From Podarcis vaucheri (lineage: Eukaryota), in the NCBI GenBank assembly GCA_965113315.1, contig OZ220364.1: 64,000 nucleotides of DNA. One strand, written 5' to 3'. The first letter of the stretch is position 1, and each line of letters starts with the position of its first letter. Of the stretch, positions 2,900-63,876 are shown in pieces. Position numbers and translations under genes: made by a program. The notes under the pieces were generated by a model that searched no databases, had not been told where the DNA came from, and worked only from the letters and a program-made list of their open reading frames with translations.

Positions 2900-4620
2900 G
2901 ATTCCTGCTGTTGACTTCTGCCTGAGGCGGCCAGAGAGCGCCCTTTCCAGCCGGCGCGGCCGCTAAGGGGACGCTGCGAATTCTCCTGCTCCACCTTAAG
3001 CCGCCAAGTGTAGGGAGGCTACGGGAGGCAACAGCGCCTCCTTAAGCGGCTGCGGGTCCCGCTCGGGCGGTGGTGGAGGCGGCGGCGCGTGCGGCTGGGG
3101 GAAGGGGAGGGAGGAGCTCGCGCTGCCCGGACCAGCCCGCGCGCCGCCGCTTCCAGCAGCAGCAGCGCCTGCCGGGCGGAGGGTCTAGTTGGCGCCGCGC
3201 GGGCAAGAGCTGAGGCCAAGGCGGAGCGGCGCACGGGGGCAGCGAAGCCCCGGGGGAGGCGGCAACACCATGGCCGGGCCCCCGCCGCCGCCCCCGGGCC
3301 AGGAGGCGCCGCGCTACCAGGAGTGGATCTTGGACACCATCGACTCGCTGCGCTCGCGCAAGGCGCGCCCGGACCTGGAGCGCATCTGCCGCATGGTGCG
3401 CCGGCGGCACGGCCCGGAGCCGGAGCGCACCCGCGCCGAGCTGGAGAAGCTCATCCAGCAGCGCGCCGTGCTCCGCGTCAGCTACAAGGGAAGCATCTCG
3501 TACCGCAACGCTGCGCGGGTCCAGCCGCCTCGGCGAGGCGGAACGCCCGCCGCCAGCCCCGCGGCCCCGCAGCGGCCGGCCCGCACTTCCCCGCCCAGCG
3601 CTCCCGCCGCCGCCGCCGCCGCCACCGCGACGCCCCGGTCCTCCCAGCGTGCAGCGCCCCGCGCGGAGCCAGCCGCGCCGCCGCCACCTCCTCCGCCGCC
3701 GCCACCGCCGCAGCCGCCGCCTCCTCGTCGGACCGGCCGGGAGCGACCGCCGCCGCCTGCCCCCGCCCCGGAGGAGCCCTCCCCCGTCAGCCTGCGAGAG
3801 ATTGTGCGCTACTTGGGCGGCGACGGCGCCGCGCCGGGGGGCGGCCGAGTGACTCGAGGCCGAGCGCAGGGGCTGCTCCAAGAGGAGCGGCTGGAGAGGA
3901 CCCGCTTGGGTGGCGGCGGGGGCGGGGGCGGCAGCGGCAACAGCGTCGCCTTGCCCAGGGCGGAGAGAGGCGCGCAGGCCCGGGCGCCCAGCGCCAGGGC
4001 TTACAGGAACAAGGTGAGGGGCTGCCGCGGCGCGCGCGGGGGGAGGGGGTGGGGGCGGGGCGGCGGGGGCGCACGGGCTGAGGGGAACAGGTGAGCTTCC
4101 CCAGGACGGAAACGGACCTAGCGGAGGAGTGCGCGCGCAGGGGGTGCCCGAACACTGGGCGCGCGGGGGGGGGAGCGGAGGGGCGGGCGCCGGAGAGGAG
4201 CCGCTTTCGGGGAGGGCAGACGGCGCCCAGCCCCCCGAATGTTGTCAGCGGGCGCTCGCGCAGGTGTGCGTGTGTCTGGGAGGAAGAGTTATGGGCAGCG
4301 CCCAATCAAATCGCTTTGGCACGGGAGGGGGCGCCACGATTGGTGCCTGGGCTTCGACGGGGCGACATTCTCCCGTGCAGTTCCGAAGTATTGTGGGAAG
4401 GTGAGCGGAAAGGCCGCCGCTGGATGGCACAACTCCGCCTGGTCCGCGGGGAACTTGCGGGGCCGAGTTGGGGAGCGGGTAAGAACCAACCCCGGGCGTG
4501 TGGAGAGGCTCCGCTCACCTGCGTGCGTGGCCCTCCGGTGACACTTGTGCGGCGTGGAGGATGCACGTCGGGCCATGGACAGTGGCCCCTTCTCCGACCT
4601 CGCCACCCCCCCCCCCGCCA
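2900..4620 (+). promoter_or_regulatory. CpG island covering the SAMD1 promoter, exon 1 and the start of intron 1
   Basis: Abrupt switch to very high GC with dense CpG/GCGC and GC boxes around the SAMD1 start codon; G-run tract just after the exon-1 donor. Boundaries approximate. Confidence 0.85.
3270..4013 (+). CDS. SAMD1: SAMD1 coding exon 1 (winged-helix domain, Pro/Ala/Gly-rich region)
   Basis: Kozak accATGG at 3270; donor AAG|GTGAGG after 4013 (phase 0). Confidence 0.93.
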
Positions 4621-18245: not shown

Positions 18246-33937
<15,692 letters not shown>

Positions 33938-36900
33938 CTTCGCACCGACTGACACTGGGCAGGCTGTCCGTATCTCTCTGAACCGCTAGGCCAGGTGCAG
34001 GGCTCCGTTTTCACCTGCGACCTGAAAAAGAGGACCACCAACACTTTGTGTGGAACCCCACCCCAATGAAGCTCTGCGGGGATTGTGTGTAGTATTGCAG
34101 ATGACTCTCACATCCCGTTGGTTCAGCAAGCTGAACCTAGCTGCTTCGGATGCAAAAAGCCAGCACTGACTATATACACAAAAGCATTCATATGCGGCCA
34201 TCTAGTCACATGAAGCTATCTGCAGCTTGTTGCCAAAAGCTTTCAGAGAGGTGGATTCTACATTGGGGGACTGCAAAGAAAAGCATGAACATCCACGCAG
34301 TACAAAACTAATTTTCTAGGGATGCCAAAGTCATAGTGGCAGCTGCCACATGTTGGAGTCTTACTGGTAAATCAGATCAGTCAAGCAACAGTTGCGTTGA
34401 TAGGATCCACCTTAGAGTCACAAGGCCAATGTTGTGTTGTTCATTAGATTGGCCCTATTTCTGCCACTGTGCAGTCCCCTTTGTAGAGCAAAGTGACAAA
34501 TCAGGAACATTGCCGCCCAGAAAGCAGCATTTGCCCATGGCTGGCAACTATTTTAGCTGTCTACTTTGCAACAAGGGTTCCGTCACTCCCAGCAAAAAAA
34601 GAAAAGAAAAAAATGTGTTCCATCAAAACCACAGAGCACTCAAGCTTGGGGGATGTGGTGAGAAAGAAAACCAAATCCACCAGCAGAAGGAGAACCGGAT
34701 ATTCCTCACCATGCTCTGCTCCCTATGCCTTCCCAAGTAACTTATCGGTGGAAGAGCAGCTGGCAGGGACAGGCCAAGAGAGAGTATAACTTGAAAGGAG
34801 GACTCTTCCCAGATGGCATCCAATGGACCGTCAAGGCATTTAAAAGATCACTACAAAATTTACAACCACTACTGTAGCTGAAATTTATATTCAACAATAA
34901 ATCCTACGCCGCAAAACCAAGGCAGCTCAGAGCCATACTATTAGATAATTAGATCTCCTATCAAAGCCCTTTTCAGTATGACAAAAGAGAGGAAGTTATT
35001 TTAAACATGTCTTAGCTTTGGAGGGTGGGTTGGGTTTTTTTAAGGGATTTGTTGAAGACAGTTCAATTCCTGCCTCTAAACTGAGGAGAGACTCAAAACT
35101 TTACAGGGAAAGTTGAAGTGCCTCTGAGACAAGGTGAACAGCAAAACAGAAGATGCAAATTTGTTTCAGAAAATGCCTCGCACTTACACACACTTGCTTG
35201 GAGCCTATTTAAAATGCAAGGTTTATCCACATTGATTATCCAGGATTGGCATGTAGCATACAAAAGAGCTGAAGGCCTTATGCAACTGCCATGCACTGAA
35301 TCTTGGGTTGATTTGACGAGAGCAGCCTCCGCCAACAAATCAGCCCCTGCCAGCACAGAACACTGGCTGAAGCCGAAAGCAACTGGAGGGTACCAGGTCG
35401 GGAGAGCTCCCCTTATGAGAACCTTGGGTGCACCTGATGCAGTTTGCACAGCAGGTTTGGGACCAACCAAGCCCTGTTGCCAGTGGTAATTTTGCACCTG
35501 AGCAGAAGTGTGATGAACTGTGGCTGCAGAGGCCACAATACATGATAGCACTCCTCTCCAGGGGAGAGGGCAGAAGACAAGGGGAGGGCTGCCAAGCCAC
35601 GTGGTCCAACGTTGACACTACCAATGATCTATTTTCCTGTGCAGGAAGTGAAAGACTAACTGGCCCTTGGCAGCCTCTGCACAGTCTTCCCAGGCAATAA
35701 GTGTCATAGAATACTTTGCCCGCTGCCCATGAACTGACAGAGATGACTTAGGTAGATAGGTCTCAAGTCACCCACTGACTTAGAGAGGCTCTTCCACCTA
35801 TATCCTAGGGCACCCAATGGTCCACCAGCAGATCACATTACCTTCTGCCCACTCTAGAGAAGCCATATGCAGAAAGCTTCAGTGACTGCTGACAGCTATT
35901 AGATCCTGAAGGCAGTTCCCAGGGTCATTTCCATTCTGCTCTTAGAGCACAAGGCAATGAGGGGGCTATGGGTAGAGTCTTCACCCATATTTGCTTATTC
36001 AGCTGGTTGTTTTAAAGCCCTAACTGAACATCCAGGACATTTAGCCACTCCTATGCTGAAAAGAATGGTTAACTTTTAACCCACTGTTTGATGTGGGAGA
36101 GAAAGATGCACAAACAGCACCATATTTGCAAAAAAGCACATTTGTTCAATGCAACAAGAATGAACTTGTTGGGGACCAACCCCTTAAGTCACACTTGACA
36201 CAACACCTCTCCGTGTAAATAACCTTCCCAGTCAATATCAGCTATTGCCAAACAGTTCTGATAGGAAACTTTTGCCCTCCCGCCCTGTTATTATCTTAAG
36301 AGGTCCTTTTGTTTTAATACTGTACTTTGGTTTCTCCTGACCTTCTTGTCTCCTGCATGGTCAAGTTTCAGTTTCACTTTCTGCTTGCTGAAAGTGTGTA
36401 CCCTCCAAAATCCCTTATATATGCATATACTGCATATGCCGTTCCTTGGAGTATCACAGAAGGTAGCCATTTAACTTTTAAGTCATAACCAGCCTCCAAT
36501 TTTTATTTTCCATATTGTTTTGTTAATGAATACAACTTGACATTTTAAAACCCAGCAGAGCTAAGTGTTGTTCATGCTACAGTTGAACTCTTTGAAATCT
36601 CTCTTACACACACCCTGCCCAAAATTGTATTTACACTTTTCCCCCACCCTTCTACTGCCCACCATGAGTACCGTTCAGTTGTCTCAAATATCTTGTTCGG
36701 TTGTTTATAACCCACCACAACATCCTGGCATGTTTATAATTCTGCATCACCCAAAGCTGCAAAGCATATGTTTCAGTCCACATCTGAGCCCAAGGCAGGC
36801 CCATGGGAAAACCTGCTGCTTTTCTAGCCCTTGAATGCTGCTGCACATTCTCCCAAACTTTCCAGCTACATTAGACACACAACGCTCCCTCGAAGGCAAA

Positions 36901-45613: not shown

Positions 45614-47121
45614 ATAAAGTGTTTCCCTTCTGCTACCATCACATCTGGATAAATAGGGTCTGCTGGTTTTTGAAATAACACAGAAAATCTCCTTCAACTC
45701 TCAGCCCTCCCTCTTTTTTGTTTTCAGTCTGCAATGTGTGTGTTTACTCTGATTTTCCCCACATTTTAATTTTTTAAAAAATATTCCCCCCAACCCAAGT
45801 TTGAATAACAGTTCGGCAACACGCAGAAGGATGAGCTGGGAAACAGCACAAACTGGAGAAAGAAGCCAAATGTGCACGGATATGCCCTTCCCTTTCCGCA
45901 TTGTTGTTGCCAACAGGTTTCTTTCTCTCCAGGAAACCATCTCACCACCAGGGTGTGCTGTGAGCAGGAGGCAAGGCAGCCCTTCGGTTCAAAGGAGGAC
46001 AGAATGGGAAGCAAAGGTTTCCAACTGAGGCAGACAAGGAATTTGAAGCACAGGTGCAAACAGCAGGCGGTGAAGGGGAAGCAGGTCCCTGTCAACCCTT
46101 GTTTGGCCATTTTCTCAATAATTCACAGGGTTAAAAAAGCAACAACAGCAGCAGCAGCAGACAACATGGTAGAGTGGCAGCAATCACCTGACCTCTGGGT
46201 AGCTAAGTTGCTTCTGCTTACCTGGAAGGGGAGGGGCCAGGCAGCGAGGAGGTCAGCGCAGTGCAAACACACCAGGAGTGCCGGTCTGCCTCTGCATTTG
46301 CACCATGATGACCTTCTCACTGCCTTGCCCCCTCCACCCATAGTAGCAACTCAGTTGCCTGGAGGTCAAGTGAGCACTGCCACTCCACCATGGCTTCCTC
46401 TACTGGCCATTAATCTGAACTCTGTACCAAAACTCATCCTAATTCATTATTTGTGGGACTGTCTTGAGGTTGCATTGCCAGATTTCAATCTAAAAAGGAC
46501 CGTAGGATCTTAGGGAGGCATCCAGGGCAGATCTGACTCCCCCTCACCCCAAGCCAGTCCAGCTGTGGGTTATCTGCCTTGCATCCTCCTCTGCTCTTTC
46601 CAGTCAAAGGACCTTAAGGGTATCAGAGCTGTCCATCTTGGAATTTGGCAAATCAAACCAGAGAATTTACAGCTATCCCTAGCGTGCAAGGGCTGTGCTT
46701 CCTCCTTCATTCCAGCACTGTGACCAAATCATGGACTGTGGAGCCCTAAAGGTGGCTGCAGTGGGGAGATCTCTTTGTTTGACTCTCCCATTTTGTTGCC
46801 CAAGGCCCAGTTCCAGCCTGAGCCTGGCTGGGCTGAATGGAGAGATTGAACCCAGCGACATGAGATCCATTCCTCAAATCGCTAGATCTCTAGACTCCCA
46901 GGCACAGCACAATGTAATCAACCCATATACTGAGGAACTAGTGCACCTCCAAAATCCATGTTGCCTTTCCTAATTTTAGTTGCATTTGCATTCATGGAAG
47001 CAGGGCAGGTTTAGGATGTCCTGTTTTCTCCTGACATCAGGCAGAGGGGCCTCAAGTCCATAGGGGTGATCCAGAGTCACTGGAGATGGGTCGACTCGGT
47101 TCCCGAGGGTAGCGGGCTCCA

Positions 47122-47430
47122 TCACTCCAGGAATTTGTGAATATCCCCATTGAGCTGGTACCGGGGCCCCATGGCAGGTTCGCTGAGGAGCGGGCAATGA
47201 GCCGGGCCGCACTGGCAAGTGTGGATCATCATGACGTTCTTGGAGAAGGAGCTCCCATCCGGGCAATGGAAGGGCACGCTCAGGGTGCGAGTGCGCAGAG
47301 GGACACAGCAGCGGCCATCCAAGCAGGACCCGCAGTAGCTGGGCTGGTAACGGCGTGGGCTCTTGCAGCCAGCGTAGCTGAACCTCACCGGCTCACGCAC
47401 TTTGTGTGTCCGCAAGCACTTCTTGCCCTT
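47122..47430 (-). CDS. CCN1-like exon 5 (CT cystine knot)
   Basis: Acceptor ctcttttcag|AAG; [22 protein letters not shown]...[11 protein letters not shown]...DIHKFLE-TGA. Confidence 0.94.
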   Translation of the reverse strand, partial: KGKKCLRTHKVREPVRFSYAGCKSPRRYQPSYCGSCLDGRCCVPLRTRTLSVPFHCPDGSSFSKNVMMIHTCQCGPAHCPLLSEPAMGPRYQLNGDIHKFLE

Positions 47431-50400
47431 CTGAAAAGAGGAGAGGAAAGTATTTGCACTGTGTGCAAAAGAATACAGCCCAGGAAAGCTGTATGCACAC
47501 AAAGCATACAGCTGGAGAACCTAGTCATGGAATAGAATAATAGAATTGTAGAGTTGGAAGGGAATATGGGACAGTTGCAGGAATATGCAGCTGTCACATA
47601 TGGGGGATCACACCTGCAACCCTGGCATTATCAGCACCACACTGTAACCAGCTGAGCTATTCTTCTTTATAGTAAACAAGCACACACACCTCTTAGCTCC
47701 ACAGGCACCATTCCTGTAATGTAAGCCTGGAGCAGAACATCTCACCATCTTGGGCCCTAATCCCACCTGTTAGGCTCAAAACTTGCCATTTTGAATGGTT
47801 GGGAGTGCAGGCAGGCTCAGCTCTCGTGTCCCAGATGCTGGGCTTCTGTGGTAAGAAGTGCCCTCCCCTATTCCCTGCTCGCCCTCTTCCCGCCTTCCCA
47901 ACCCTCACCTTTAGTTTGGAAAAATCAGGTTTCCCGCAAGGCCTGATCTGACACAGCCGGGTCTCTTTGATCAGTTTGCACTTTGGGTTGTCGCTGGTGA
48001 CGCGGGTGGAGATGCCGAAGCCGCAGCTCTTGGAGCACGGCGACCAGTCCGTAGTCTGAGCCAAGCACTTGTGCTGTTGCTTTGCCACGTGGCTTTGGAA
48101 GAATGGCCTCCATGCTGGGGAAGAGAAGGGAATCCCAGTTACCGCACTGTCATTCTGAACCCAAAGGGAACAGTGAGCAATGTACTGCCAGCAGCTACAC
48201 ACATTGGCCAAGCATAAAATGAGATTGAAAGGGATTAAGTTCCTTAAGAGATGTGGAACACGTCTGTTCTGTTCTCTGGATGTTACTAGACTACAGTTCC
48301 AATCATCCCCAGCTACTGGCCATGCTGGCTGGGAATGATGGGAGTTGGAGTCCAGCAGCACCTGGGGAGCCACAGGTTCCCTGCAACTTCCACAAATGGA
48401 AGGCAGGCATTAATGGGCAACAGAAGAAGGCAATTGTCTCCTTGTCCTGTAGATGAGCTTCCCATAGGCATCTAGCTGCCATCATGCTAAGTCAAGATGA
48501 CTCAGCTGGATTCTTCGTAAGCCTCCATGGCAGCCACACCATTCAAAATGGCAACTACAGAAAGAGGCAAGGCCACATGTTGGGTAGGAAACATGGGAAA
48601 TGAGTTTGTAGGGGGGAAATGGAGGGAAGAGGGTGTGGATGTGGAGGCTGTTCGGGACTCTGGCAACTGAGAACCCATCAACTCCATTTAGACTAAACTG
48701 GCATCTGTAGAATAAATTCCCAGTAGGTGCAAACTCTTGTCTTCTGGGAAGGAAATGCCCTGCATTCCTCTTTTGCCATGAAACCACAAAACAAAATATG
48801 CAGGAGTAGTGGCATCCCGACCAACCATCACTTGGGAGCAAGAGTGATACAGGAGATGGTGTGAACAATCCCTCTCAGACAGATTTAATGCTTTTCGGTC
48901 CCTCTCTTATGCAACCACTGCCATGCTTAGTCGAAATAGCAACTGGGAACCAAAGCAAATGCAAGGGAAGGATCACATTTCCTGCCCCTCGGGAGCATCA
49001 GATATAGATCCTGAAAGGGCAAAGGCCAGCTCCCACTCTTACCCCTATTTATGTTCTGTGTCTCCACCCTGTTTAGGTGCCGCTTCCACGCAACACAGTG
49101 CCAGCTTTCCATTTCCCGCCCTTGGAGCAAAACGGTTATAAACTTGGCCAGCTGCATCTTAGGCACTTCTCAAGGCGCAACCTTTCCCTCAGTGCCTTGG
49201 TGCACAGACCGCATGAGGCCCAAGGAGTAGGAAGTGAAGACACCAAGGCACTTGGAGGCAGGAGGAAATTTCAGGAGAGAGTTAGTAGCAAAGCCACTAG
49301 ATTGCTGTCAAAGAGAGAAGGGAGCTACATCGCCACTAGCTTGTGTGAGACACGGACCTAGAAATTGATAGTGCAAGGAGGTTTCATGGGTGAGATGGTG
49401 TCCCAAAGCGGTTTAAGGAGCAGCTTGTCATCAAAGAGCAATGCCACACAGTAAGCAGATGACTTTTAAGCCTTGCAATGCGGCCTGCTAATAAACATCC
49501 TGGTATGACATCCTACAGTACATTTTCCTACAAGGGAATGCCTCTGACAGATGCAGTCTCACAAGAAGAAGAAGAAGAAGAGTTTGGATTTGATATCCCG
49601 CCTTTCACTCCCCTTCAGGAGTCTCAAAGCGGCTAACAATCTCCTTTCCCTTCCTCCCCCACAACAAACACTCTGTGGGGTGAGTGGGGCTGAGAGACTT
49701 CACAGAAGTGTGACTGGCCCAAGGTCACCCAGCAGCTGCATGTGGAGGAGCGGAGACGCGAACCCGGTTTCCCAGATTACGTGACTACCGCTCTTAACCA
49801 CTACACCACAAGCAATGGCTGGAAGCCTTCATCTTACTTTGCTATGCCATTTCCCATGGGGCAGATGCAACACACTGCTGCACAGCTCATAAAGCAGTTT
49901 TGGTTTTTTTGGTCCAAAGGTGCCTATCGTTCTAAGCTGGGGAGGTGGAGAATCCCTACAGCCATAAATCACCTCATAACTACCTATATTCAGGTCCCCA
50001 AAGCAATTGTTTAAATTGTGATGCACACCAAATTTAGCAACAACCAAATATACTGCCCAAGACTATCCCCACGCAGACTCTCTATTCCTATGCAAACATT
50101 AGAGTGACCTAATACGATGGAAAATATCCAGTATAAAGGGATGCCTTCCATTCTAAGGATTTCCAAAGGAGCAGCCATGTTTGTTGTTGCAAAAGAAACT
50201 TCCAGGTGGACTCGTCTCGTCATCCATTTGCAGGCCACATTCCCATCTGGACAACCTTCAAGCGTTCAAGGGGTGGGTGGGGCAAGAGGCAAAGGGAGCC
50301 AAGCAATCAGTGCAAATTTTAACTCAGACAGTACACTAGTTTCTAGACTCGCTCACATGCTCCTCTCAGTCCACGCATGCAAGCTTGAGGCATTTTCAGA

Positions 50401-53400
50401 GACACACACCAGCCTGTCAAGAAGACTCAGGAAGCGTGCAAAGCCAGGCTAGCGAAGCAGTGGTGTCGCCTGGGGATAGGGGGTGTGCTCGGTGAGAGGG
50501 TGTGGCCTAGGGGAAGTCCCAAGGGAGTGGGGGCGGGACTTATTCAGCCCTGGGGCCTGAGCCTCCCCATCCCTGCTGTAGTCCATGAAAGCTTATGCCA
50601 CAACAGAAGTGTTAGGTCTTTAAGGTGCCACAAGCCTCTTGGTATAAATACAGGCAGAAGCTGAATAGCATTCCTGCTCCTCCAGTCGCAACAGCTCTGA
50701 CTGCACTCTTCAGCCCTCACCTGGTAGGTTTTTCCAGTGTCCGCCTTTGCCCACATAGATGAGCTCATTGTCACTGGAGTCGCCATTGGTGTTGTACTCA
50801 AAGGTGACCCCTCCATACTTCTTGAGTCCTTTGCTGCACACAAACTTCTTGCAGCACTGGCCAGGCACCTTCAGGAGTTTGGGGCTGGGGCAGCCCAGGG
50901 AGGCCAGGGGCAGCTCTAGTGGGCAGAGCGGCTGGCAACCCACAGCCCCGTCGATGCAAGTGCACTGGTGTTTGCAGCTGGGCTGGAAATTCTCCCCGTT
51001 CTGGTAGATGCGGCCGTTGTATTCGCAGGTCCGGCCTTCTTGCTTTGCTGAGGAGGTAGAAAGGTATGTGTTATTCAGTTTCAGAAGTTGGATTAAAAAT
51101 GAAAAAGTGATGCTGACTGTAAGGTCCCTGTAATTGAGGACCAGGCTACAGGCATCTGGATTGGTTTCAAGAAGTCATCATGGAATTGCACGAGGGCAGC
51201 AGTTTCAGAGATCCTTTGAAATAAGTGCCAACAGGCAAATGGTCCCTGACATTCATCCCAGCAACACAAAATCCTCCATTCACCTAAACTGGTGTCTAGT
51301 TAGGGATTAGCATCCATGGTTACCACAGATCAATGATGGGAGACCAGATAATTTTTTAAAATAGCCAAGAGGTGATAGGGTGGGAGAGGACTCTGAGATC
51401 ACTTCCTGCTTCCCTCTACTCATCCGCAACTTCAGGCCAACCTGGGAGTGAGCTACATAACAGCAAGCCTCATCCCTGGAGTCTGTGGATGTGAAAAACA
51501 GAGCAGGACTTAACCTGCCAGCGTCGTAAGTAAGAGAAATACACTCCTCTGCAGAACTAGGTTTTTAGGGGCCATGTCAACAAGAAGAGAGTGTTTGGAG
51601 CTTTAAATAGCCATGTGAAAACAGGATGCGAAGAGCTCACATGGACCGAGATCGGGTTGCAAAGGCCTGAGCCACGCCTGGAGCGCCTATCTGCTACATG
51701 CAGTGTGCTTCCCCCTGGCCCACAGAGATGTGCCCTTCACCTTACTCCCCTGCAACTATTTAGACAACTTTTCACTTGCTCCTTGCTCTCTTCTTGGCAT
51801 GTGTGCTCCTGAACGAAGATCTTACTTCTCACACTTTCCAGCAAGGGGCAGTGCTCAGACATACAGGGAAACAGGTGGTCCCAGACACAACCGTGACCCT
51901 GGTAAATGTACAGAATTGAAGTAGTCTCGAGGAAGGAGTGGGGAAAACATGCTTTCTCATGGGAACAGTGTTGCCCTCCAGCATCGCCTCCCAGCTCAGA
52001 GAGAGAGAGAGAGGTAACATGTAGCTTGCATATGTGGAGCCACAAGATGAATGCTAATACAGATCTACTAGGACCTTCAATGTTTCCAAAAGCAAGTGTG
52101 CTCTTGTGTGAGCGTCATAAACCTGCTACCTAGAAGGGAGCAAAATACCTGGCGTAGAAACTGCCAAGGAGCTCCCTTCCTCCTAGTCTGCAAATCTGGT
52201 TTTCTGTCCCACTGGGGGGGAAAAGAGTGAGTGGCTGGCTGACCCTGCAAAAAATGCTCACCACATCCATGAGAGGAGATAGAGGGAAACAACAGAGGTT
52301 CACCCTCCACCAAGCAGAGCCACAACTCAAGAGTCCCATTGCTGCCCAGCTGCCCTCAGAGATCTCTTTTACACCAGACTTATCCAACTTGGCACTTCCA
52401 GATGTTCCAGACTACAGCTGGTGCTGATGGGAGCTGTTGTTTAAAACATCTGGAGGGCACTAGCTTGGTGAAGGCTGGATTACATCACTTCTCTCCAACT
52501 CCTGAGCTCATGCCATTTTAAAGCAAGCACACACCGAGAGAGGGAGGTTTAAAAGCAGTCATAGGAACAAACAAGCATGAAAAAGCTGCACAAATATTTT
52601 GCTTGGGGCAACTCTCGCCTTACTTAGGTGACCGGCAACAGAGGTTGCCCCAAGCAAATTTTCCAAGAAGCACTGAAGGAAACCCTTGATCAAGAGACTG
52701 GCTTTCTCAAAATGCTTCAGGAACAAAAATATTTGCGCAACTGTCTCTCCACACACACTCCTGTCCAATGTTTTGTGCCTCTTCACGATTTCCATTAACC
52801 TTTCTATCGTCATGGCAATGCCACGATGGATTCCACAACTACATCCGTCACTAGAGGGAGGTTGGATAAGAGACGACGTATTTTGCTACATCTGCAAATT
52901 ACCTTCACCAGCCCTCACGGTGGCTCTGCCCAACCCTTCCGGACTTTGATCCTCTTAAAAGAAAACACACCTGGGACACGGGGACCAGTCATCCCTGATA
53001 TGATTGCCAAAGCAGAATATGTACATCAACAGGAAATCCTTTCCTAGTCTAGCCCCAACAGAGAACGTGTCTGACTAGGCTGGAGGAGAAGCCCTTGCTC
53101 CTTCCTCCTTCATTAAATTATGTGCCAGTTTGTGATTAGGTGCCAGTTTAGTACATAACATGCCACTGCCCAACATAGTTGGTTGCTGGTCAACACCCAG
53201 CACACTGGGTACGACTTAAAATCGCAGTAATGATTTCAAAGCACTTTCTTGCAGAGTTCACATAAAATACAAAAAAGAAAAAAAAGGTAACCAGCAAGCA
53301 GAAAAACACTCAGTTGAAATTATCATCATGACCATCAACAGGATTAAGTAGCAGGAAGCATGGTTTATTTTGTATTTATTTAAAGCATGCACTCTGTTCA

Positions 53401-54921
53401 GTGACCGAAATAAATTGATTCATTCATTTAAAGCATTTATAAACCCGATAGAAACTTAAAATAAAACAAATTCTATTTAGTAGTAGTAGCAGCAGCAGCA
53501 GCATACTGTGTTTCTTTCACAGTGCAAGGTAGGTTTACAAAACGGTTTCAAAAGTTATCATTTTACGATCACTGATAAACCATGACTCCAGCCAGCCCCA
53601 CAAACAAACAGCTAACAGAAGGGTCGAAGCCCTCTTCCACTCCGTCCTTTCGCCTCTCTTACCCCAACAGATGCCCCGATTCGCCAAGGGGTCGGCCCCA
53701 AAATTGCACTCCAGGCCCTTGTGGGGGTCGCAGGGCGAGAGCTGGTCGCAGTCCTCGTTCAGCTGCCGGGCGCACACTTGGCAGCAGCCGCAGTCGTCCA
53801 GCACCAGGCTGATTCCGGGGGGGCAGCGAGGCGGGCCGCCAGGGGGGCATCGGCACGTGGCGGGGCAGCGGGAGGCCACCTGCAACGAGAGAGGAATCCT
53901 AGAACTGGAAGGGACCGCCTGAGTCATCTAGTCCAACCCCCTGCAATGCAGGGATCCTTTTTGCCCTACAGGGGGCTCAAATTCATGGCCCTGGGATGAA
54001 AAGTCTACTGCTCTACCGACTGAACTACCCCAGGGAGGTAGGAAAGGCGGAAGCTGGCCGAGAGGAGCACTCCGCGGGCAAATTGGGGCGCTGAAGCTCC
54101 GGATCAGGGCCCTCCTCTCTTAACAGCTTGCGGCGCTTGTGGGATCTTTGGAGACGCGCGGATCTTAACCTTCGCCTGGCCGCCTGCTATGTATTTATTT
54201 TAAAGGCCACACCAAAATAGTTTCCTAGATGGCGCTACATGCCACGGAGTCCCGGCATTCTCGGCCTCCCCTACCAACGTGCCCGTCCCCTCCATCCCAA
54301 ATAAATCTCCGTAATAAAATCCCTGCCACCACCATCAAAGCAGCCCCGCCACAGAGGCACCGGGGCTAAAGCGGCGGCGGAGTTGCAGCTCCCAGGAGTC
54401 CACAGGGGCGGAAATTTAAAAACTCGCCTTAATGCTCGGTCAGGTTCTATTCCTGAGCGCGTCCACTCTGGACAGGCTCGCCAGATTTAAGCATTAGGAA
54501 GTCTCACACACCGGCCCGATTCCGCACCGCTTCGAGGCACAGAACACCTCCCAGGACCCGGGGATCAACCCCCATCCCCACCGCAACCGGCCGGGACGCG
54601 TGTGTGAATAAATGTGGCTCCGCGAGTGCAGTCACGTTGGTGAGCCCGGGATCCACCGGGAGACCCAGCAGAGGGGGGCTGGGGGCCAGCTAGAAACTGG
54701 AATCCAGAGTTTAGCGAGAGCTCGCTAGCATTTGATGAAACACCCCCTCCTCAAATGATTCTCGCTGCCTGGTGCTTGGTCACCCCTGCCTGTTATCATC
54801 AACAAGGTTGCGCGCACATTTCACTTGCTTAAGCGGAAGAGAAAGAGGTGGCTAAGCAAGAGCTACTCACCAGGGAGATACAGAGCAGGAAAGCAGCGCT
54901 AAACAGGACAGCCGGCCTCAT
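47122..54921 (-). CDS. CCN family member 1-like (CYR61-like) matricellular protein; complement(join(47122..47430,47909..48114,50721..51047,53663..53879,54871..54921)), 369 aa
   Basis: Signal peptide plus IGFBP (12 Cys), VWC (10), TSP1 (6) and cystine-knot CT (10) modules, one per exon with the canonical CCN phases 0,1,1,0; 51+217+327+206+309=1110 nt. CCN1-type signatures: [25 protein letters not shown]-terminal DIHKF. Confidence 0.93.
47528..47660 (-). mobile_element. Degenerate tRNA-headed SINE with CR1-like tail (CCN intron 4)
   Basis: The minus strand starts tagctcagctggttacagtgtggtgctgataatgccagggttgcaggt (tRNA-like) and ends in cccttccaactctacaattctatt (CR1-type tail). Confidence 0.55.
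47909..48114 (-). CDS. CCN1-like exon 4 (TSP1)
   Basis: [45 protein letters not shown]; acceptor ttccccag|CA; donor AAG|GTGAGG. Confidence 0.94.
49563..49810 (-). mobile_element. tRNA-derived MIR/CORE-like SINE (Squam3-like)
   Basis: Minus strand has A box TGGTGTAGTGG, B-box-like GGTTCGCGTC, core GGGTGACCTTGGGCCAGTCAC and a (CTT)n tail; near-identical copy at 63071-63314. Confidence 0.85.
50721..51047 (-). CDS. CCN1-like exon 3 (VWC and hinge)
   Basis: [39 protein letters not shown]...[10 protein letters not shown]; acceptor cctcctcag|CA; donor CAG|GTGAGG. Confidence 0.94.
53663..53879 (-). CDS. CCN1-like exon 2 (IGFBP module)
   Basis: [58 protein letters not shown]...GICW; acceptor gttgcag|GTG; donor TGGG|GTAAGA. 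Confidence 0.94.
53893..54031 (-). mobile_element. tRNA-Lys-like SINE with CR1-like tail next to the CCN exon-2 acceptor
   Basis: Minus strand ggggtagttcagtcggtagagcagtagacttttcatcccaggg resembles tRNA-Lys; the 3' part ggttggactagatgac...cccttccagttctaggattc is a CR1-type tail. Confidence 0.7.
54871..54921 (-). CDS. CCN1-like exon 1 coding part (signal peptide)
   Basis: [17 protein letters not shown] hydrophobic leader; donor CTG|GTGAGT (phase 0). Confidence 0.88.
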
Positions 54922-54975: not shown

Positions 54976-55002
54976 AAATAAAATAAAATAAAATAAAATA
55001 AA
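54976..55002. repeat. (AAATA)n microsatellite in the CCN1-like 5'UTR
   Basis: Direct observation; lies between the TATA box and the ATG. Confidence 0.85.
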
Positions 55003-55139
55003 ACGACTCGAGAAACTAACTCTCGGGCGATCGTAGAGCAGCTGCAAAATTGTCCCCAGGATCCTTCGGCTCCGTAAGCTCTCCGCACACCCCTTTTTGC
55101 GCAACTTTCAGTACCTACAAAGCAACTACGTTGTTTCTG

Positions 55140-55470
55140 TATTTATATTTCCCCGGGGCCCCTCCCACCTACCGGGCTGGGAGCCAATAGGAACCTCCTC
55201 GCCGGCCAATAGCAACGGTGGCACACTTCCAAACATTCCAGGGGAGGGGCTTTGGAAAGGTGGGAGGGGCTGAATGAATAGAGTCATTCATAAAATTAGA
55301 AGGCTAGTGCATTCCGAGGCGATGCGCGCGTAGTCTCGCGCGGGCCAGGGTGTTCCGCTAAGCAGAGTAGCGCTTTTATGGAGACTGCTGAATAAGGCTC
55401 CTGCTCCCATAGGGCACATCAGTGCACAGGCATACCAGTATGAGGAGCAGCCGCGGCCACAGTCATTCCT
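55140..55470 (-). promoter_or_regulatory. CCN1-like proximal promoter: TATA box, two CCAAT boxes, three TEAD/MCAT motifs and a CArG-like site
   Basis: TATAAATA on the minus strand at 55147-55140; CCAAT at 55184 and 55206; CATTCC at 55234, 55310 and 55464; gcttttatgg at 55372-55381 (one mismatch to CArG). Confidence 0.75.
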
Positions 55471-62914: not shown

Positions 62915-63051
62915 TAGGTGTGGGGAAACTTTGGCCTTCCTGGTGTTGCTGAACTACAACTCCCATAATCCCTGGCCATTGGCCATGCTCATTGGGGCTG
63001 ATGGGAGTTGTAGTTTGATGGTGCCTGGAGGGCCAGATCTCCCCACTCCTG
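62915..63051. mobile_element. Short palindromic hAT-derived MITE
   Basis: aactacaactcccat / atgggagttgtagtt internal inverted repeat; ends taggtgtgggga / tccccactcctg; TSD gcctaggt / gcctaggg. Older copies near 13300, 30460, 48250 and 52380. Confidence 0.78.
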
Positions 63052-63070
63052 GCCTAGGGAATGGGAAAGG

Positions 63071-63314
63071 GAGGAGGAGGAGTTTGGATTTGATATCCTG
63101 CTTTATCACTACCCAAAGGAGTCTCAAAGCGGCTAACATTCTCCTTTCCCTTCCTCCCCCACAACAAACACTCTGTGAGGTGAGTGAGGCTGAGAGACTT
63201 CAAAGAAGTGTGACTAGCCCAAGGTCACCCAGCAGCTGCATGTGGAGGAGCGGAGACGCAAACCCGGTTCACCAGATTACGAGTCTACCACTCTTAACCA
63301 CTACACCACACTGG
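63071..63314 (-). mobile_element. tRNA-derived MIR/CORE-like SINE (Squam3-like)
   Basis: Near-identical to the 49563-49810 copy. Confidence 0.85.
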
Positions 63315-63876
63315 GTCGCAATAAAGGAATGGTACTTTGTACATGTTACTGTAATGGCCAGTTCAGACCGGCCCTTCCTGTTAAGGAGCAGGAAGTCTGG
63401 GTAAACCATGCTTGAAGCTTCCTCCATATGGAAGCAGCTCCACACAGAAAGCCAGTCCTGAGTGGACCAGTTTGCCATGTGGATTGACCCTCATCAATTT
63501 ATGGTGGCACCAATGGAAGTCACCTATGACAACAATCATAGTGAGCTTGTACACACAAACCAGCCATCCTCCAGAGTCGCTTTCAAGGAGTCTCCGCAGG
63601 GAGGAAACATGAGGAGCCAGCTTGGTCCATTTCCTTGATGTGTAAGCATCAATAAATTTGTTATTTTAGAACTTCTACATTCTTAGGAATGATTCCTCGC
63701 TTGCTTTCTTGAAAGGATTGTACCACACATATATATTGAGCTGCCTCTTAAGAGTTACTCACCTGGTTAAATTTAAATAAACCATGTGGGAGTGTTCTTG
63801 CTGCATGACTTCTCCTCCTTCCAGTGCTAGACAATGATACATTTTTAATTTTGCCCTTATTTGGATAAAATGACAC

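Follow-up and report, generated by a model that had tools for sequence, protein, structure and literature searches.

An intact, transcribed CCN1-like gene, distinct from CCN1, beside SAMD1 and a PRR36-like gene in the lizard Podarcis vaucheri

Introduction

CCN1 (also called CYR61) has been studied intensively for its regulation of angiogenesis, wound healing, fibrosis and senescence. The subject of this analysis is a CCN1-like gene on the minus strand, at positions 47122-54921, of a 64,000-nucleotide (nt) stretch of DNA from Podarcis vaucheri (contig OZ220364.1 of assembly GCA_965113315.1); this whole stretch is called the window below. The locus is very probably a functional lacertid ortholog of the proteins that go under "CCN family member 1-like" or "CYR61-like" in databases. 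It is probably of the ccn1l2 type, and its neighbours SAMD1 and a PRR36-like gene place it in a plausible paralogue of the region around CCN1.

The closest described systems come from zebrafish and axolotl. Zebrafish ccn1l1 (cyr61l1) is a Yap-induced matricellular factor in the formation of the ear canals, and three TEAD motifs lie upstream of it (PMC13745464). Morpholinos against a second zebrafish gene, ccn1l2, disturbed vessel sprouting in work on tip-cell angiogenesis, where the gene was treated as "ccn1" (PMC6726423); this morpholino evidence is weak. In the axolotl, the "ccn1-like" gene of the met1 region was presented by Crowner et al. (2019) as a novel member of the CCN family, ancient in origin, shortened in its hinge, of unknown function and equidistant from the ccn1 genes of human, Xenopus and axolotl (PMC6473073). 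A comparative paper holds that land vertebrates consistently have six CCN genes (PMC6610741), and reviews say the same; that statement is contradicted by the present data.

Structure and domain content of the gene

The gene consists of five coding exons (Table 1) in a window that has no undetermined bases (N). The joined coding sequence is 1110 nt long, equivalent to 369 codons and a stop codon, with no internal stops, and all four introns were found to be GT..AG in a splice check. Exon 1 encodes a hydrophobic stretch of 17 residues, followed by VAS and then RCP, which resembles a signal peptide by eye. Of the 39 cysteines of the protein, 38 belong to the mature part (12, 10, 6 and 10 in exons 2 to 5) and one to the putative signal peptide. 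The gene model was searched exon by exon or by way of database proteins, and the exons were joined for counting, alignment and trees.

Single-exon Pfam scans, all above the gathering cut-off, identified IGFBP in exon 2 (PF00219, 6.3e-13), VWC in exon 3 (PF00093, 1e-11), TSP1_CCN in exon 4 (PF19035, 1.6e-21) and Cys_knot in exon 5 (PF00007, 6.9e-11). Exons 3 and 4 also match solved structures of the corresponding CCN3 modules, namely the VWC structure 5nb8 (4.6e-22) and the TSP1 structure 6rk1 (1.6e-18). The order IGFBP, VWC, TSP1 and C-terminal cystine knot is that of the CCN family, as is the five-exon layout with one module per exon, in which exon and module limits coincide.

The 38 mature cysteines align with cysteines in 25 of 25 CCN1 proteins (24 of 25 at one column), in 8 of 8 ccn1l1-type proteins and in 25-26 of 26 members of the clade to which the window protein belongs (see below). 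Within exon 3, a VWC stretch of 14 residues is identical to CCN1; this V2-like segment presumably overlaps the reported alpha-v-beta-3 site of CCN1. The basic segments of the C-terminal (CT) module, KGKKC...R.HK and ...RRY.P.YCGSC, are partly kept relative to CCN1, and we take them to correspond to its heparin and integrin sites (H1/H2). The protein ends in GDIHKFLE, a CCN1-type tail. Sequence change is concentrated in the hinge, which has 54 residues against a median of 60 in CCN1 and is 21-25% identical to the CCN1 hinge. The VWC module, for its part, is 99% identical between the window protein and Anolis.

Relationship to CCN1 and to other CCN1-type genes

The RefSeq protein XP_028573152.2 (P0371), "CCN family member 1-like" of Podarcis muralis, matches the window protein without gaps over 369 of 369 residues at 98.6% identity, that is, with five amino-acid differences; the Lacerta agilis protein P0372 is 97.6% identical. 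An exon-restricted search with the frame of exon 4 retrieved proteins of squamates under the names "CCN family member 1-like" and "protein CYR61-like", and some databases label ccn1l2-type proteins simply "CCN family member 1". Beyond the lacertids, identity to the window protein declines in the order of the species tree: 81-88% in other squamates, about 72% in turtles, 66% in a newt, 64% in the coelacanth, 63% in lungfish and about 61% in sharks. True CCN1 proteins of a bird, lizards, a snake and a primate are 53-58% identical to it, and ccn1l1-type proteins 51-52%.

A maximum-likelihood tree of 64 proteins (IQ-TREE, LG+C20+F+G4) was rooted on CCN2, CCN3, CCN4 and an amphioxus CCN; a search of 50%-identity representatives, whose rows are often fragmentary, was used solely for the choice of outgroups. 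The tree contains three CCN1-type clades, with sharks basal within each. The clade of the window protein has 27 rows, a support of 100/100 and a stem of 0.36, and includes sharks, bichir, paddlefish, gar, teleosts, coelacanth, lungfish, caecilians, newt, turtles and squamates. Its row nearest to the window protein is P0371, at a path distance of 0.013. CCN1 proper forms a second clade (98/91) that runs from a chimaera and sharks through mammals, birds, turtles, lizards and snakes. The third, ccn1l1-type clade (92/90) contains a chimaera, sharks, a catfish, the coelacanth, salamanders and frogs, the last as a 67-member cluster that includes Xenopus tropicalis. CCN1 and the window clade are sisters (91/88). 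When the tetrapod CCN1 proteins and the tetrapod members of the window clade were forced together, the log-likelihood fell by 127 (delta lnL) and the approximately unbiased (AU) test gave p-AU 1.3e-6; a tetrapod-only origin of the duplication is rejected by this test.

The window protein therefore lies outside the CCN1 clade, together with fish and amphibian members, and other squamates have a separate CCN1. Both genes are present within single species in Anolis sagrei (P0368 and P0383), Gekko kuhli (P0366, P0004) and Chelonoidis abingdonii (P0082, P0018). The axolotl (Ambystoma) is represented once in every one of the three clades, by P0437, P0348 and P0466; the last of these (XP_069460090.1, 365 residues) belongs to the newt cluster within the window clade. 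A catfish likewise has exactly one gene per CCN1-type clade, one of them named ccn1l1. The teleost members of the window clade are about 385-397 residues long, sit on long branches and carry the zebrafish/Ensembl-derived name si:ch211-106h11.3; a literature search under the name ch211-106h11.3 found nothing. Because of the catfish gene set and the names of these teleost proteins, the window gene is probably the tetrapod counterpart of zebrafish ccn1l2. The best explanation of the tree is that three CCN1-type genes (CCN1, ccn1l1-type and ccn1l2-type) were already present in the common ancestor of jawed vertebrates. Proteins of the window clade evolve at about twice the rate of CCN1, with a lizard-turtle path of 0.54 against 0.21.

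Transcription and selection

Logan contigs from three sequencing runs (X1, X5 and X8, from three studies and two organisms) cover the exons at 98-99% identity. The contigs join 47430 to 47909 and 48114 to 50721, precisely at the predicted intron borders; the CT..AC found there on the plus strand is GT..AG on the gene strand. The X8 contig, 1505 nt long, runs through the 3' untranslated region (UTR) and exons 5, 4 and 3, and the 411 nt left over would consist of exon 2 (217 nt) and 194 nt of exon 1. Its record starts 78 nt beyond 46950, and contigs from X1 and X5 cover 46950-47432. In the RNA-seq run X23 a few reads fall on exons 5 and 4 only, in an orientation that fits minus-strand RNA. At the 3' UTR no AATAAA occurs within 1.3 kb, and the extent given in Table 1 is a minimum. 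On the other side of the gene, an (AAATA)5.6 microsatellite at 54976-55003 on the plus strand, which reads (TATTT)n on the gene strand, lies in the 5' UTR about 55-80 nt before the ATG.

Compared with the window, the contigs show at least 11 synonymous and 3 non-synonymous differences in X8, at least 6 and 5 in X5, and at least 6 and 3 in X1. The ratio of non-synonymous to synonymous differences per site (pN/pS) is about 0.08-0.23 among the differences listed, on about 182 synonymous and 655 non-synonymous sites; the counts are small, the substitution classes were taken from the reading frame of the window, and two doubly changed codons were split by hand. The CCN1-like gene is real, intact and transcribed, and it is under purifying selection.

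These results bear out much of a sequence-only reading of the window, which had described an intact five-exon gene of 369 residues with 38 cysteines at 47122-54921: its coordinates, length and number of cysteines are all correct, and the CCN1-type strings that it had picked out (15 letters, and DIHKF) are present. Its view of the gene as a paralogue, diverged from amniote CCN1, agrees with the low identity to CCN1, the separate clade, the two-gene species and the AU test. The spliced contigs and the pN/pS values, small as the counts are, speak against an unexpressed gene or one under relaxed selection.

Several intronic segments have very high contig depth (47350-47750, 48150-48550 and 49550-49950), and this depth comes from dispersed repeats, not from the CCN gene. 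The segment at 47350-47750, in intron 4, is repeat-derived and has a contig depth of 300-2400 in RNA-like runs; its joints to other intronic repeats come from chimeric assembly of repeats and are no sign of alternative splicing in the CCN gene. In intron 3, 49478-49950 is a copy of a dispersed repeat, probably a short interspersed element (SINE), that recurs in the window at 62931-63404; the frame translations of the two copies share a long string. The intron 3 copy lies beside a GAA microsatellite and reaches a depth of 5,000-200,000 in RNA-like runs, as a highly transcribed family and not as part of the CCN gene. Also in intron 3, hundreds of X23 reads match about 34 nt at 48317-48352 with unmatched flanks, and 57 reads have an "opposite strands" joint of 48317 with 48333; most likely these reads come from an abundant repeat or hairpin located elsewhere in the genome, of which a short piece is present here. 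No RNA gene turned up between 46 and 56 kb in Rfam, tRNA and tandem-repeat scans.

Chromosomal setting

The neighbours of the gene in the window are SAMD1 and, downstream, a PRR36-like gene (Table 1), and not DDAH1 and ZNHIT6, which we take to be the defining neighbourhood of CCN1. Human CCN1 is on 1p22 near SAMD13, BTBD8 and LRRC8B-D, and SAMD1, PRR36 and LRRC8E are on 19p13. PRR36 and BTBD8 can be regarded as paralogues because the last exon of the PRR36-like gene encodes a BTBD8_C domain. The 979-residue exon of the same gene has no Pfam match. An intron of the PRR36-like gene also contains, on the opposite strand, a full-length L1-type long interspersed element at about 19.6-26.2 kb (21108-25951, plus strand). 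Its ORF1 (337 residues) and ORF2 (1253 residues) are intact, the latter with endonuclease and RVT_1 (1e-40) domains.

Table 1. Features of the CCN1-like gene, its putative promoter and its neighbours, in window coordinates
Feature	Position	Strand	Content
Exon 1, coding part	54871-54921	minus	ATG at 54921-54919; 17 codons of the putative signal peptide; donor GTGAGT (splice check)
Exon 2	53663-53879	minus	end of putative signal peptide and IGFBP module; 12 Cys; QLNEDC inside; ends in phase 1
Exon 3	50721-51047	minus	VWC module; 10 Cys; first part of hinge; NELIYVGKG inside
Exon 4	47909-48114	minus	remainder of hinge and CCN-type TSP1 module; 6 Cys
Exon 5, coding part	47122-47430	minus	basic linker KGKKC; CT (cystine-knot) module; 10 Cys; stop TGA 47122-47124
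5' UTR (putative extent)	upstream to at least about 55064	minus	from the leftover of the X8 contig
3' UTR, minimum extent	46872-47121	minus	contigs continue past the stop codon
Putative core promoter	55142-55469	minus	motif reading on gene strand
TATAAA	55147-55142	gene strand	
CCAAT boxes (ATTGG), two	55210-55206, 55188-55184	gene strand	
TEAD-type GGAATG motifs, three	55239-55234, 55315-55310, 55469-55464	gene strand	
SAMD1, first coding exon	3189-4094	plus	winged-helix domain PF21524 (1.3e-27); small helical domain PF24971 (3.5e-18)
PRR36-like gene	18246-39500 (outer limits approximate)	minus	downstream neighbour of the CCN1-like gene
PRR36-like gene, last coding exon	18246-18752	minus	BTBD8_C PF15363 (3.1e-20)
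PRR36-like gene, large low-complexity exon	27315-30254	minus	979 residues, proline/serine-rich
PRR36-like gene, part	33476-33955	minus	
PRR36-like gene, 5' region	about 38.7-39.5 kb	minus	GC-rich, CpG-island-like

Distribution and loss

The taxonomic distribution was read from the best 120 matches of each of two protein searches and from several 90% clusters that were opened. Within this set the window clade has no protein from a mammal, bird, crocodilian or frog, and the ccn1l1-type clade has none from an amniote. On the database sequences, CCN1-type genes number three in salamanders and apparently two in frogs, namely CCN1 and the ccn1l1-type gene. The ccn1l2-type gene seems to have been kept in lizards, turtles, salamanders and fishes and lost in mammals; in human the site of the loss may be the stretch between PRR36 and LRRC8E. 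The sequence-only reading had proposed a gene kept in squamates and lost in mammals; the absence from mammals agrees with the protein-database matches, but the gene is no speciality of squamates, since it extends from sharks to turtles, salamanders and caecilians. Its further proposal of a 19p13-paralogon setting fits the neighbours, with the winged-helix and small helical domains of SAMD1 and the BTBD8_C domain of the PRR36-like gene verified, and ohnology is plausible.

Alternative explanations

Since the protein has CCN1-type signatures (the DIHKF tail and the VWC core) and since some databases use the name "CCN family member 1", the gene might be taken for the CCN1 ortholog itself, relocated in squamates and fast-evolving. 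The chance of this is negligible: Anolis sagrei and Gekko kuhli, squamates other than the one whose genome is studied here, have a separate and highly conserved CCN1, the two clades are split at 100/100 and 98/91 with sharks in each, and the AU test speaks against their union. A relocated ortholog is thus ruled out for squamates in general by the two-gene species and the tree. Similarity to CCN1 is also all that would favour a copy of CCN1 made recently within reptiles, whether as a lineage-specific duplicate or as a retrocopy. We give this next to no credence, because the four ancestral introns are kept and because orthologs with 58-72% identity occur, in species-tree order, in turtles, amphibians, lungfish, coelacanth, ray-finned fishes and sharks, in agreement with the AU test; tree and intron structure together rule it out. 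A reading of the locus as a pseudogene was likewise rejected. The gene could still be intact and transcribed and yet be drifting towards the loss seen in mammals, redundant with CCN1 and with no distinct role of its own. Repeated loss, visible as the lack of any mammal, bird, crocodilian or frog member among the matches listed, the doubled protein rate and the low expression all fit such a course. It is nevertheless improbable, given that all 38 cysteines and the cores of the domains have persisted from the divergence of sharks onwards, that synonymous differences are in strong excess among close lacertids, that the VWC module is nearly identical to that of Anolis, and that the putative promoter is intact.

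For the origin of the three CCN1-type genes two accounts can be compared. That the window gene is the 19p13-paralogon ohnolog of CCN1 is plausible: the paralogue pairs SAMD1/SAMD13 and PRR36/BTBD8 tie the two regions together, and CCN1 and the window clade are sisters at 91/88. We infer this rather than take it as established, because a third clade exceeds a simple model of two rounds of genome duplication (2R) and because the axolotl gene has been reported from elsewhere in the genome. These same two points, the latter being its place among genes of human chromosomes 3 and 17 (PMC6473073), favour a split of CCN1, ccn1l1 and ccn1l2 by local duplications before 2R or by some other route, with the SAMD1/PRR36 setting a coincidence. 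Moreover, CCN1, 2, 3 and 5 already fill the classical four-fold paralogon of 1p, 6q, 8q and 20q. In Latimeria, CCN1 and the ccn1l2-type gene (proteins P0017 and P0026) share the length of their longest listed contig (172,207,807) and may be on one chromosome, which bears on the origin of the duplicates and would also favour a non-2R route. Such an origin is possible, though we incline against it.

Several points weigh against the reading of the locus as a functional ccn1l2-type ortholog, or against parts of it. The contig depth over the CCN1-like exons is low, at 3-7. The runs that gave spliced contigs are presumed to be RNA, which is a guess, and a processed DNA copy is formally possible. The H2-like segment differs from CCN1 at several of its basic residues. 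The case for equating the gene with ccn1l2 is indirect, drawn from the catfish gene set and the teleost names. The absence from mammals, birds, crocodilians and frogs is an absence among annotated database proteins only, and assemblies of birds in particular often lack genes of GC-rich microchromosomes. Clusters of three GGAATG motifs within 350 bp occur 4 times in the 64 kb, so that the cluster upstream of the gene is only mildly unusual. Finally, the functional role of the tetrapod ccn1l2-type members is predicted from sequence alone.

Putative promoter and predicted function

Three GGAATG motifs lie within the 330 bp upstream of the TATA box, where about 0.3 would be expected. Because of the TATA box and these three upstream motifs, the gene is predicted to be switched on by YAP/TEAD. 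From the literature on CCN1, its product would act in the manner of CCN1, as a matricellular protein that is secreted and binds heparin and integrins; integrins and heparan sulphate would be the route of its action. A role that has diverged from that of CCN1, or is narrower, is suggested by the shorter, fast-evolving hinge and the roughly doubled overall rate.

A wider scheme can be built on these elements, in which three CCN1-type genes are ancestral to jawed vertebrates, the original CCN family exceeded the usual six members, and the ccn1l2-type gene, set between PRR36 and LRRC8E in a 19p13-like paralogon, was lost independently in mammals, archosaurs and frogs. Elsewhere it would serve as a YAP/TEAD-driven matricellular factor with its own role in vessel growth, wound repair or appendage regeneration. 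Taken as a whole this scheme is rather unlikely. Its evolutionary half, namely the three ancestral genes and the independent losses, is likely and is largely implicit in existing annotation. A role of the CCN1-like gene in tail regeneration is pure speculation.

Comparison with known systems

RefSeq, Ensembl and ZFIN-type resources already contain the gene. Automatic annotation has placed it in dozens of genomes of reptiles, amphibians and fishes, and it is understudied rather than new. The sequence-only reading had called its product a largely uncharacterised protein. This holds in that the function of the tetrapod members is still predicted; it does not hold in that the gene is already in RefSeq, was described in the axolotl in 2019 (PMC6473073) and is probably represented by fish ccn1l2. 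Many land vertebrates have a seventh CCN gene, conserved and expressed, and salamanders have an eighth. The CCN1-type genes show clearly how ancient paralogues can be lost in some lineages and kept in others; the gene itself is not of a new kind. The practical consequence is a caution for studies of reptiles, amphibians and fishes that use "CCN1/CYR61" as a YAP target or in knockdowns, given that the zebrafish "ccn1" morpholinos targeted ccn1l2.

The nearest counterparts are in other squamates. The Podarcis muralis protein P0371 and the squamate cluster at 90% identity (Lacerta agilis, Anolis sagrei, Pogona, Rhineura and snakes, including the "protein CYR61-like" of Notechis) are the same gene as that of the window, and these squamate RefSeq entries for CCN1-like proteins are automatic annotation. 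Among fish genes, zebrafish ccn1l2 (cyr61l2; ENSDARG00000099985) is the probable ortholog. Zebrafish ccn1l1 resembles the window gene in being of the CCN1 type, in being absent from mammals and in having a similar pattern of upstream TEAD motifs, but it is a member of the third clade.

The axolotl met1 gene is probably P0466 and not the ccn1l1-type P0348, because of its length and short hinge. Unlike the window gene with its SAMD1/PRR36 setting, it has been reported among genes of human chromosomes 3 and 17 (PMC6473073). Amniote CCN1/CYR61, lastly, shares with the window gene the five-exon plan, the four modules, the 38 cysteines, the KGKKC linker and the ...DIHKF tail, and differs from it in belonging to a separate clade, in having a different chromosomal neighbourhood and in having a longer hinge.

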